From: Octopus sinensis
Taxonomy: Eukaryota
Assembly (NCBI RefSeq): GCF_006345805.1
Contig: NC_042997.1
Location: 90,768,001 to 90,832,000 of the forward strand
Direction: 5' to 3'
DNA length: 64,000 nucleotides
Shown: positions 17,413-19,187 of the stretch, one piece after another
Numbering within the stretch: the first letter of the stretch is position 1
How the letters are laid out: every line of letters starts with the position of its first letter
Notes under the pieces: model-generated
Told to the model about the DNA's origin: nothing
Databases searched by the model: none
What the model saw: only the letters and a program-made list of their open reading frames with translations
Program-made: the position numbers and the translations under genes

Positions 17413-19153
17413 AGAGTTAGAAGAAGATATTAAAAAAAAGACAGCAAAACTTCTAAAATTACAGAGCACAAAAGTAGTGGAATCATCAAATCAGTTAAGA
17501 TTGGAAGAGGAAAGGAGACAAAGAGAAGAAGAAATAGAAAAGAAAAAGGAAGAGCGAGAGAGGTTGAAAAAATTAGAAGAGAAACGCAAGGCTGAAGAAG
17601 AGCAGAAAAAAGAAGAAATTCGGAAAAAAAGAGTAGTGAAGCGGCTCGTGGCAGTAAATCAAAGACCGTGGCAGATAAAGTGAGTAAAATTCGGTGCGTT
17701 TTTTACTTAATTTTTAAACTAACAAACTGGTTATGTTCAAACAGGTCAGATCTGGTTTCTCCTATATACCTAACAATGTCATTCCAAAAATAAACAGTTA
17801 CATCATTGAAATGTCAAAGCTATGAGATGATGATGATGATCATCATCATCATCGTTTAACGTCCGCTTTCCATGCTAGCATGGGTTGGACGGTTCAACTG
17901 GGGTCTGGCAAGCCCGAAGGCTACACCAGGCCAGTCAGATCTGGCAGTGTTTCTACAGCTGGATGCCCTTCCTAACGCCAGGTGTATAATTAATTCAAAG
18001 CAATGTGAATAAATAAGCATTACATATTACTATTATTATTAGTATTAGTATTGTCCCTTTGATCCCCGGTTGACAGTTTGCTTATTATTATTATTATTAT
18101 TACTATTTTCAGCTTCGCCTCGTATTGCATATTATTTCTCCATACAGGGTTTTTTTTTTTTTTTTTTTTCAATGGCGGCCCATTTTCGCGGGGTTCCACT
18201 ATTCCCTTCTCTCTCTCTCCCTCTTTTATGTTGTCTGCCATCCCCCCTCTTCCTTTCCCCCCTTCCATTGCTAAGAGCATTTTTAAGCCAGCCCGTCAAG
18301 TTCAACCTTCGCATATTCCCGTGTCAGGCCGAAGAACGAAATGTTCCCAAGATAAGAGAGTCTTTCTAATCTAATGTTGTGGTTGAGCTGTTTATTATTA
18401 TTACTATTATTATTAGTATTAGTATTGTCCCTTGATCCCCGGTCGACAGTTTGCTTATTATTATTATTATTATTACTATTTTCAGCTTCGCCTCGTATTG
18501 CATATTATTTCTCCATACAGGGTTTTTTTTTTTTTTTTTTCAATGGCGGCCCATTTTCGCGGGGTTCCACTATTCCTTCTCTCTCTCCCTCTTTTACGTT
18601 GTCTGCCATCCCCCCTCTTCCTTCCCCCCTTCCATTGCTAAGAGCATTTTTAAGCCAGCCCGTCAAGTTCAACCTTCGCATATTCCGGTGCACCCGCCCT
18701 TGCACACCACAATACCGGATATCTCTATATTTGCTCCATCTATACCGGATGTCGCTTCTCCCACCACCATTATAGGTGTCTACTTTTCGAACCCCCTCTC
18801 AATACGCTATTTTACCATGCATTACCCCTCTCTTGATATCCTACGTTCTACTTGCCTAGAACCTGTCATCATTTCTCTGAACCACCCTCCCCACTGGTGC
18901 TCCCCTATATTTCTGCACACCCCCCCCCCACATAAAAAGCACCATCTGAACGTGGCCGATGCCAGACCCCTCTGGCACCTGTGCAGGTGGCACGTAAAAA
19001 CACCCACTACACTCGCGGAGTGGTTGGCGTTAGGAAGGGCATCCAGCTGTAGAAACACTGCCAGACTAGACTGGAGCCTAGGGCAGTCCCTAGCTCCCCA
19101 GACCCCGGTCGAAATCGTCCAACCCGTGCTAGCGCGGAAAACGGACGTTAAAC

Positions 19154-19187
<34 letters not shown>
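17413..19187 (+). pseudogene. Partially spliced (semi-processed) retrocopy of MORC2 pre-mRNA, antisense within MORC2 intron
   Basis: 13 nt of exon 57986-58079 + whole exon 56599-56637 + exon 54151-54366 joined without introns, then reverse complement of intron 54150-52681, ending in (GAT)11; 1-nt loss in an A run shifts the frame. Confidence 0.95.

Follow-up and report, generated by a model that had tools for sequence, protein, structure and literature searches.

Few retrocopies are expected in genomes whose active LINEs (RTE, CR1, L2) demand a specific 3′ tail, since the usual mRNA does not bear it. Rodent preproinsulin I is the classic semi-processed retrogene. snoRNA retroposons sometimes carry flanking sequence of the host, and they are L1-dependent, with priming at A-rich or poly(A) sequence. 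These retroposons are described as derivatives of intronic snoRNAs of host genes (PMC1687206). Movement of spliced exons together with a mobile element is known from SVA (for example, the SVA_F1 elements with a MAST2 exon) and, rarely, from L1: a host promoter upstream of the element drives transcription of a chimeric RNA, and its retrotransposition carries along the upstream flank and even spliced exons (PMC4859970). In the stringent type of LINE, any RNA bearing the 3′ tail of the LINE is mobilised (PMC3747384). Microsatellite tails are typical of RTE elements (PMC9115989, PMC3747384), and the 3′ microsatellites of RTE correlate with the target-site nucleotide (PMC6007223). Recent activity in Octopus has been described for RTE elements (PMC9115989, PMC13282606) and for the Dong/R4 clade (PMC13282606).

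The locus described here lies in a window of 64,000 nt of Octopus sinensis (contig NC_042997.1, positions 90,768,001 to 90,832,000, forward strand). Similarity at the protein level identifies the host gene as MORC2, as the initial sequence-only reading of this DNA had proposed: the exon for the CW domain matches that of human MORC2 with E = 1.3e-10 (1e-4 for MORC3), and a large exon is 88% identical to ATPase MORC2 of Octopus bimaculoides, a protein that carries the Pfam domains HATPase_c_3, Morc6_S5, zf-CW and Chromo_MORC2. Eleven MORC2 exons were mapped in the window, and residues 1014-1176 of the O. bimaculoides protein are absent from it. In O. bimaculoides, the MORC2 locus is 158 kb long. 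Between exons 38121-38210 (O. bimaculoides residues 973-1002) and 16675-16705 (residues 1003-1013), a large intron of this gene contains, in antisense orientation, a reverse-transcribed copy of a more upstream part of the same gene (Table 1). Insertion of the copy into its own gene had also been claimed at the outset, and it holds.

On the plus strand, 17413-19187 reproduces minus-strand MORC2: it opens with the end of exon A, takes in exons B and C and runs on for 1.47 kb into the intron that follows. All coordinates first given for the copy and for the parental exons hold base for base. The 13-nt segment of exon A (AGAGTTAGAAGAA) has no second occurrence in the window, and the base 5′ of 17413 is T in the target versus A in exon A. 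Because the exon matches of 13, 39 and 215 nt adjoin in mRNA order, a match by chance is excluded. The 1348-nt intron A-B and the 2232-nt intron B-C are excised exactly, as had been claimed. The splice sites flanking parental exons A, B and C are canonical (AG...GTAAGT, AG...GTGAGT and AG...GTGAGT, respectively), and both excisions correspond to true mRNA junctions, since the O. bimaculoides protein runs across them. The A-B junction of the copy, ELEE/DIKK, is found in that protein, and in a tblastn search its residues 569-642 match 17414-17632 in one unbroken stretch. Thus, an RNA intermediate lies behind the copy, in which two introns had been cut exactly at GT/AG and the third donor was read through. 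By blastn, 17463-19168 matches 54368-52682 on the minus strand with 96.5% identity over 1723 columns (8 mismatches, 14 gap openings, E = 0); a stricter global alignment of copy and parent gives 7 substitutions and about 14 indels. The run of seven A in exon C, versus eight in the parent, causes a frameshift. The copy is a dead, antisense, partly processed MORC2 fragment joined to a new copy of a mobile element. An ORF of 100 aa specific to the copy has no match among 5.8 billion predicted proteins, and in a genome search the exon/intron part of the chimera was found only in the parent and in this copy, with no further offspring.

Table 1. Features of the MORC2 retrocopy, its parent and its target (positions in the window).
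Feature	Position	Strand	Evidence
5′ target flank, TA-rich microsatellite, tandem pair of ~100-nt units	17203..17412		17203-17303 matches 17317-17413 at 90%
Retrocopy, final 13 nt of MORC2 exon A (5′-truncation point of the cDNA)	17413..17425	+	exact, unique match to reverse complement of 57986-57998
Retrocopy, MORC2 exon B, 39 nt	17426..17464	+	39/39 match to 56599-56637 (-), unique
Retrocopy, MORC2 exon C, 215 nt vs 216	17465..17679	+	matches 54151-54366 less one A
Retrocopy, transduced intron flank, opening with unspliced GTGAGT donor	17680..18024	+	collinear with parent 54150-53798
Antisense RTE 3′ fragment inside transduced flank	17827-17980	antisense	90% identical to LINE (L037) nt 2963-3105
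Retrocopy, mobile element itself	18025..19153	+	family homology, alignment to L039
Retrocopy tail, (GAT)11 + G	19154..19187	+	sequence; parent tail is (GAT)5
3′ target flank, TA-rich microsatellite	19188..19850		sequence
Host MORC2 intron holding the antisense copy, 21.4 kb	16706..38120	-	exons 38121-38210 and 16675-16705 on either side
Parent MORC2 exon A	57986..58079	-	O. bimaculoides residues 541-572
Parent MORC2 exon B	56599..56637	-	O. bimaculoides residues 572-585
Parent MORC2 exon C	54151..54366	-	O. bimaculoides residues 586-657
Parent intron flank upstream of element, 353 nt	53798..54150	-	collinear with copy; family homology ends at element edge
Antisense RTE 3′ fragment in parent flank	53842-54001	antisense	same fragment as in copy
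Parent (source) element, gene-sense, 29-nt deletion vs copy and family	52682..53797	-	alignments to copy and family
Parent element tail (GAT)5	52682-52696	-	sequence

Two explanations that do without reverse transcription into this site have to be weighed against such an anatomy. A DNA-level segmental duplication from exon A into the intron, followed by precise loss of two introns, would suit the position of parent and copy, which lie near each other on one chromosome and are inverted. However, it requires two independent intron deletions exact to the splice sites, an end exactly at the tail and growth of that tail, and no duplicated intron sequence is left; the exact exon-exon junctions effectively refute it. 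The second is an assembly artefact, in which transcript-derived or chimeric reads had entered the contig. Many of the differences between copy and parent are indels of 1 nt in homopolymers, typical of consensus errors in long reads, and only one haplotype is represented: the unique 901 nt beside the insertion occur a single time in the assembly, with no second haplotype contig. Against this, unique and microsatellite sequence continues without gaps on both sides, with no N runs in the window, and a cDNA contaminant would normally show poly(A) or random ends rather than the junction of tail and target that is typical of the family. Furthermore, the parent has lost a segment of 29 nt, lying between ATACCGGAT direct repeats, that the copy and the family retain, and this deletion, the 7 substitutions and the unequal tails argue that the copy is not an artefact, an origin that we hold to be highly improbable. 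The substitutions, T>C (2), C>T (2) and C>A (3), include no A-to-I editing footprint (A>G on the sense strand).

Beyond exon C, the sequence-only reading saw about 1.47 kb of intron read through to the 3′ end of a sense RTE at 52682. The stretch is collinear with the parent as described, and the tail is indeed shared with a LINE, but just 353 nt of it lie outside a terminal element, and this element is complete rather than a bare 3′ fragment. It is non-autonomous, about 1.1 kb long, and combines ~375-nt tandem units with a 3′ end of the RTE type (parent 53797-52682, copy 18025-19187). The copy contains about 1.8 tandem units (18025-18323 and 18399-18690 are 96.3% identical), which are followed by a core of ~460 nt; the final 240 nt derive from the 3′ end of an RTE-like LINE. 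The number of units is variable, and one family locus, L045, has 11.3 units of 380 nt. The 5′ end of the element is placed at 18025/18026, since homology to the copy is lost exactly there in four independent loci. The genome has at least 4082 candidate copies; over 476 nt, identity is 94-97% for the 39 best of the others. Another locus, L039, is 93% identical to the copy across 18025-19160. A variant, ccgcgctagcacggg, had been taken as private to the parent and its copy; L039 and L045 carry ccgcgctagcacggg too, so that it is a trait of the family. An apparent short subfamily of 437 nt proved to be an alignment break caused by the 29-nt deletion of the parent. No tRNA head was detected in the element by ARAGORN, and an Rfam search for a tRNA, 5S or 7SL head gave only sub-threshold miRNA-like matches in TA repeats. 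By design, this abundant composite with variable tandem units may be regarded as an analogue of primate SVA.

A hairpin is predicted near the 3′ terminus of the element, 10-12 nt before (GAU)n. In the family variant CCCGTGCTAGCGCGG, a stem pair is preserved by a double change from A-U to G-C, and covariation over the hairpin is slight, with a term of -0.12 kcal/mol and double changes in 2 of 22 pairs. The tail comprises 3-9 GAT units in 29 family copies (mean 6.2) and 11 units in the copy. The contrast between (GAT)11 and (GAT)5, together with a lack of poly(A), belonged to the first description of the locus and is seen in the sequence (19154-19187 versus 52696-52682). Poly(A) is absent from the copy although AATAAA sits about 25 nt past the parent tail, and nothing of the sequence 3′ of that tail is found in the copy.

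The partner of the element is probably an RTE-like LINE, represented by the locus L037. Nucleotides 2865-3105 of the LINE are 86.0% identical to 18929-19166 of the copy and 86.6% identical to 52918-52684 of the parent, and it terminates in (GAT)8, not poly(A). The reverse transcriptase ORF of L037 matches Pfam RVT_1 (2e-25). Its endonuclease-region ORF, at 4057-4989 of the locus, matches proteins with Pfam PF03372/PF14529, and its best named homologues are "craniofacial development protein 2-like" proteins, in O. bimaculoides (88%), O. sinensis and Priapulus. The bovine Bcnt protein, which we take to be CFDP2, is reported to carry an RTE-1 endonuclease domain (Iwashita 2003, cited in PMC4613681). 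Domain content, tail type and RefSeq names thus suggest that L037 is an RTE-type LINE; this copy has a frameshift, and the locus does not reach its 5′ end. Dong/R4 elements target microsatellites, and for this and for their recent activity in Octopus the clade was considered as partner. It was set aside because the endonuclease region of the tail-sharing LINE is of the apurinic type, with named homologues of the RTE type.

The insertion occupies the preferred (TA)n target of the family. A (TA)n run lies within 12 nt of the tail in 17 of the 29 family copies versus 3.8% in the background, and the flank begins with AT in 23 of the 29. The TA-rich microsatellite around the copy, and a distance of 708 bp from its start to exon 16675-16705, are as originally noted; when the insert is removed in silico, the flanks close up cleanly and keep the register of the paralogous unit. 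A target-site duplication of the copy amounts to at most ATGT(A), about 4-5 nt, and overlaps the tail. Duplications of 8 nt or more were looked for, and neither the copy nor family members with unique flanks showed one. It is conceivable that the insert arose when a double-strand break in the fragile TA microsatellite was repaired, either by capture of cDNA from a partly spliced transcript or by RNA-templated repair, independently of the endonuclease and perhaps with another reverse transcriptase. This account would fit the absence of a clear duplication, a target that is a palindromic TA-rich tract scoring as hairpins, and a template RNA that comes from the same locus and hence was nearby. 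However, endonuclease-independent insertions are typically 3′-truncated, whereas the copy ends exactly at the element tail, which is longer instead of truncated. The same (GAT)n/(TA)n junction is found in those 17 ordinary family copies, and a missing duplication would be normal for the family, because members with unique flanks also lack long ones. Capture by break repair is thus improbable.

The explanation that we consider best, and probable, is 5′ transduction by a non-autonomous retroposon mobilised by RTE. The copy includes the source element and its contiguous 5′ flank, as 17413-18024 corresponds to the parent flank 54150-53798 with exons C, B and A. The element, which is in gene sense in intron C-D, would be transcribed within the MORC2 primary transcript. 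The reverse transcriptase of the partner LINE would recognise the 3′ end of the element, probably via the hairpin before (GAU)n. The nick would be made 33.5 kb further downstream in MORC2, in a TA-rich microsatellite, and priming would take place on the tail repeats, where slippage may have lengthened the tail from 5 to 11 units. The whole element would then be copied, and after it the 353-nt intron flank and the joined exons C and B; 13 nt into the 3′ end of exon A, synthesis would stop and leave the 5′ truncation. Copying past the 5′ end of the element is expected because the template would be a host pre-mRNA and not an element-length RNA. The original proposal was that an intronic tail captures host RNA; the copy does stop at the tail, but what moved is a whole element with its 5′ flank, not RNA caught by an isolated tail. 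The proposed "handle" has its known counterpart in the 5′ transduction and exon trapping of L1 and SVA (PMC4859970), here in an RTE-type form, and it is less new than had been suggested.

At the time of copying, introns A-B and B-C would already have been removed from the template and intron C-D would still have been in place. It was suggested from this that the copy is a fossil of splicing order. This is one reading only, since an intron-retaining mRNA would leave an identical copy. In the alternative, the retrotransposition event is the same, and in place of nascent pre-mRNA its template was a stable MORC2 transcript with the intron retained, or one otherwise mature; the copy would then be silent on splicing order, and its landing in its own gene would be luck. 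The anatomy needs only an RNA that lacks introns A-B and B-C and retains intron C-D as far as the tail. With either a nascent or a mature template, initiation internal to the RNA at the tail is needed, because 1803 nt of uncopied intron lie past it (the next exon is 50687-50878). The family also seems to have no general habit of local reinsertion, because no two of the 39 other best-scoring copies lie within 100 kb of each other (the nearest pair is 267 kb apart, on C3). On the other side, random landing in the same gene of ~158 kb in a genome of 2.72 Gb has p ~6e-5, a biased value in that only pairs in the same window could be noticed. A mature template is quite possible, if somewhat short of probable. 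Conversely, reinsertion into the own gene may not be luck. An RTE ribonucleoprotein may have acted on the tail in nascent, co-transcriptionally spliced MORC2 RNA tethered to chromatin and integrated nearby, and sense RTE tails in introns might then provide a general, local, poly(A)-independent route for copying spliced exons in genomes with stringent LINEs. We offer this broader proposal tentatively and think it rather unlikely.

Whichever template was used, 5′ transduction by the RTE-mobilised element can be set beside the systems introduced above. The octopus element shares with SVA a composite, non-autonomous build and tandem repeats that vary in number. The resemblance is one of design only: its modules are unrelated to the Alu-like, VNTR and SINE-R modules, and its tail is (GAT)n, with an RTE-type 3′ end and no poly(A). 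The probable partner is an RTE-like LINE and not L1. Unlike in SVA, the exons are linked to the element by a retained intron, not by splicing into the element, and unlike in both SVA and L1, initiation would have taken place at a tail within an intron, 1.8 kb before the intron end. In contrast to SVA_F1, the octopus chimera founded no subfamily and is a single copy.

The 3′ end agrees with the SINEs of stringent LINEs (UnaL2/UnaSINE1; RTE/Bov-B with Bov-tA and Au-like SINEs), in that a terminal region of ~240 nt and a short-repeat tail are common to LINE and element. As in those SINEs, the repeat number of the tail varies in the family, as slippage predicts, and as in RTE-related retroposons the tail repeat agrees with the bases at the start of the target (PMC6007223; PMC3747384). 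The difference is that the tail-bearing RNA would here be a Pol II pre-mRNA of the host, and host exons were copied along with the element. The copy also resembles semi-processed retrocopies and L1 processed pseudogenes, being reverse-transcribed, 5′-truncated, frameshifted and without a promoter, with some introns removed and one kept. Unlike these, it has neither poly(A) nor 3′ UTR, and its 3′ end, set by the tail of an intronic transposon, lies within the kept intron C-D. These features separate it from processed pseudogenes of the L1 type. With snoRNA retroposons it has in common that an intron-borne sequence of a Pol II host gene was retroposed (PMC1687206); it differs from them in its dependence on a specific LINE tail. 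In the literature searched, coverage of which is incomplete, no report of RTE-mediated 5′ transduction of spliced exons was found. The kind of event is known from L1 and SVA, and the RTE-type, poly(A)-independent variant is uncommon.

If the preferred explanation is correct, the octopus copy provides a clean case, outside mammals and free of poly(A), of the 5′ transduction by which exons are shuffled in humans. It would also indicate a way round the tail restriction of stringent LINEs: a sense element in an intron lends its tail to the host transcript, and the spliced exons travel along. The copy further suggests that an RTE-type system was active in the Octopus germline recently, roughly in the last million years, and the comparison of family members reveals a strong (TA)n target preference for this element family.

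The position of the copy may matter for the host gene itself. Copy and parent form an inverted repeat of 1.7 kb inside MORC2, in which the antisense copy provides a perfect complement of 267 nt to spliced exons A-C within the same transcription unit. Such a repeat is a possible source of double-stranded RNA. Human MORC2 silences retroelements, and octopuses are known for heavy RNA editing. If double-stranded RNA does form, MORC2 would hold a ready substrate for A-to-I editing or for the production of small RNAs.

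Direct reading of 17000-19600 and 52300-54500, with comparison by BLAST and exact search, confirmed in full the claim of the sequence-only reading that a partly spliced MORC2 RNA is copied at 17413-19187. The copy lies on the plus strand, in reverse-complement orientation to the gene-sense minus-strand sequence, and joins three exon pieces (A, B and C) to only 353 nt of read-through material and a mobile element. The first two exon pieces have no further match within the window by exact search. Two introns of 1348 and 2232 nt (A-B and B-C) are missing with single-base precision, and at the third donor the sequence continues unspliced into the next intron (C-D); the parent exons are bordered by AG and by the donors GTAAGT, GTGAGT and GTGAGT. 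A BLAST alignment of 17463-19168 with parent 54368-52682 spans 1723 columns at 96.5% identity. The tail is (GAT)11G in the copy and (GAT)5, followed by TTGACAGG, in the parent. Chance is not a candidate explanation for this match, and a DNA duplication followed by exact loss of two introns is not credible.

Coordinates of the copy, its parent and other features in the window
Feature	Position (strand)	Remark
Copy, exon A piece	17413-17425 (+)	AGAGTTAGAAGAA; final 13 nt of exon 57986-58079
Copy, exon B	17426-17464 (+)	exon 56599-56637; match 39/39
Copy, exon C	17465-17679 (+)	exon 54151-54366; A8 run one A short
Element in copy	18025-19187 (+)	
Element in parent	53797-52682 (-)	
29-nt segment	18710-18741	parent 53112-53121; between ATACCGGAT direct repeats
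TA-rich units, 5' flank	17203-17303, 17317-17413	~100 nt each; 90% identical
Tail and target junction of copy	19154-19200	
CW zinc finger ORF	59015-59197 (-)	
Inverted RTE 3' ends	53842-54001 (+), 52682-52840 (-)	83% identical over ~150 nt
L037-family internal fragments	58185-58781 (-), 49596-50167 (+)	L037-family nt 478-1076 and 2006-2594; 75-76% identical
Second LINE	43960-45906 (-)	RVT_1 1e-10 and 6e-9 at 44602-45083
Tc1/mariner-like ORF	23097-23303 (-)	

The host gene is identified by its CW ORF, which matches human MORC2 residues 498-532 (E = 1.3e-10) and MORC3 only at about 1e-4, and by a large exon 88% identical to 'ATPase MORC2 [Octopus bimaculoides]' (1176 aa). With the O. bimaculoides protein, tblastn placed eleven exons between 60287 and 16675, the final 163 residues being encoded outside the window. 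Its residues 569-590 run uninterrupted over both junctions present in the copy, which are thus genuine mRNA junctions. The copy lies antisense within a 21.4-kb MORC2 intron, flanked by exons 38121-38210 and 16675-16705.

The element belongs to an abundant family. A search of the whole assembly (2.72 Gb, 13,516 contigs; the window is C1:90,768,001-90,832,000) with copy 18690-19165, apparently unique within the window, gave at least 4082 candidates, the best 39 other copies being 94-97% identical across all 476 nt. Loci fetched with their flanks show a non-autonomous element whose 3' core, ~460-490 nt long, is constant, the 5' parts being variable. Tandem units of ~375-380 nt make up the 5' part in the copy's subfamily, and the copy carries ~1.8 of them (18025-18323 against 18399-18690, 96.3%). 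At locus L045 (991-5266; G000 C18:3269135-3274622) a ~380-nt internal unit is repeated 11.3 times with 96% matches, much like the variable-number tandem repeat of primate SVA. Homology to the copy ends exactly at 18025/18026 in four independent loci, and this sets the limits of the element in copy and parent. An apparent '437-nt subfamily' proved false, early alignments having been split by the parent's 29-nt deletion. Across 29 loci (L008-L036), at least three unrelated 5' heads sit on the one RTE-tailed core: the tandem-unit head at ~20 loci, a second at L011, L012, L018, L026 and L034, and a third at L013 and L035. Such variety would be expected if upstream sequence had been captured repeatedly; it suggests either that or a modular 'jigsaw' evolution, and separate subfamily origins are another possible source.

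The copy is best read as a 5' transduction. The sense-oriented element would have been transcribed within the MORC2 primary transcript, and a reverse transcriptase, probably of RTE type, would have started within intron C-D, at the (GAU)n tail, passing over a nearby AATAAA and the 1803 nt of intron downstream. It would then have copied the element and the host RNA, from which the two upstream introns had been spliced beforehand, and come to a stop after 13 nt of exon A. It is established that stringent LINEs mobilise RNAs carrying their tail (PMC3747384), and for L1 and SVA also that spliced exons and upstream flank can be carried along (PMC4859970). Tail recognition may involve a terminal hairpin, predicted in the last ~35 nt before the tail (CGUCC...[CCAUG-CUAG-CAUGG]...GGACG); the family's CCCGTGCTAGCGCGG variant preserves a stem pair by a double change, A-U to G-C, a weak covariation. 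This variant had been called private, but it is also found in other family members printed (L039 and L045) and is therefore a family trait.

The insertion site is of the kind that the family prefers. Tails of the 29 independent copies have 3-9 GAT units (mean 6.2), and the flank begins with AT in 23 of them; a (TA)n run lies within 12 nt of the tail in 17/29, compared with a background of 3.8% at random window positions. This is a strong (TA)n target preference, and the copy was inserted in a TA-rich tract of this type. Since its 5' flank holds a tandem pair of units, the pre-insertion site could be modelled: with the insert removed in silico, the flanks rejoin in register with the paralogous unit 110 nt upstream. 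Target duplication amounts to ATGT(A) at most, overlapping the tail, and none of 8 nt or more was found in family members with unique flanks either. In RTE-related retroposons the tail repeat is reported to match the opening bases of the target (PMC6007223). A cDNA captured where the TA tract had broken would be consistent with the missing duplication; however, the tail is intact and lengthened and the junction is family-typical, neither of which such capture fits.

Copy and parent differ by 7 substitutions in ~1690 nt (0.41%), with no A>G editing footprint among them, and by ~14 indels, mostly homopolymer changes of 1 nt, for which consensus errors may be responsible. The 29-nt segment is shared by copy and family and missing from the parent, so that the parent changed after copying. 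This speaks against transcript contamination, and an assembly artefact is likewise contradicted by the copy/parent divergence and by clean, gap-free flanks. With a calibration of Jukes-Cantor distance 0.065 to ~18 My (PMC13282606), the substitutions suggest an age of about half a million years, an estimate with a wide margin. Divergence of family copies from the present one is 3-6%, which makes them much older. The genome search found no other offspring of the exon/element chimera.

The partner LINE is probably of RTE type, an assignment well supported but indirect. Locus L037 carries, on its minus strand, an endonuclease-region ORF, a reverse transcriptase (Pfam RVT_1, 2e-25), a C-terminal ORF and a 3' UTR. 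This UTR ends in (GAT)8, and over its last 240 nt it matches the last 240 nt of the element at 86-87% identity. At 2975-3754 (-), the reverse transcriptase is followed by a cysteine-rich finger of PHD-like or C1-like type (Pfam PHD 8e-5, below cut-off), which is not known as a standard RTE feature. Named homologues of the endonuclease ORF are 'craniofacial development protein 2-like' in O. bimaculoides (88%), O. sinensis and Priapulus, a name presumably denoting the Bcnt protein. As listed among the references of PMC4613681, Iwashita (2003) concerns an RTE-1 endonuclease domain in bovine Bcnt. RTE elements with microsatellite 3' ends are reported to have been active recently in Octopus (PMC9115989; PMC13282606), with 182 recent RTE insertions listed in the latter. 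Many 'SINE-like' pieces of ~150-315 nt scattered over the window are 5'-truncated 3' ends of the L037-type LINE, and two internal fragments of its family lie in MORC2 introns. The window also holds a second, different LINE, ending near an (ATT)n-like run, and an ORF resembling the C-terminal part of a Tc1/mariner transposase, for which a Pfam search gave no match.

The main interpretation of the sequence-only reading, a retro-inserted, partly spliced MORC2 RNA with an RTE tail, is upheld. It is refined in that a whole, abundant, SVA-like, RTE-tailed element moved, so that the event is an RTE-type version of a known process and no new principle. No account of spliced exons transduced by RTE machinery turned up in the literature searched. 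The copy is a neat, rare specimen, from a cephalopod, of a host-gene retrocopy that is partly spliced and arose independently of poly(A). Introns A-B and B-C are gone from a molecule still holding C-D, with which nascent RNA and intron-retaining mRNA are both compatible as template. The naive probability of landing in the own gene is ~6e-5 (158-kb O. bimaculoides span, 2.72 Gb), in a scan that saw within-window pairs only; among the best-scoring family copies none lie within 100 kb of each other. Local capture of nascent MORC2 RNA would be the novel reading, and seems unlikely.

The copy and the parent at 52682-58079 (-) lie 33.5 kb apart in one transcription unit as the arms of a 1.7-kb inverted repeat, which are ~99.5% identical when substitutions are counted. 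In the copy the exon part, 267 nt, is uninterrupted and forms the complement of spliced MORC2 mRNA. The repeat is a candidate substrate for double-stranded RNA formation, editing or rearrangement. Separately, two RTE 3' ends lie in opposite orientation in the parent intron, and pairing between them could make the pre-mRNA fold in the stretch from exon C to the element tail.
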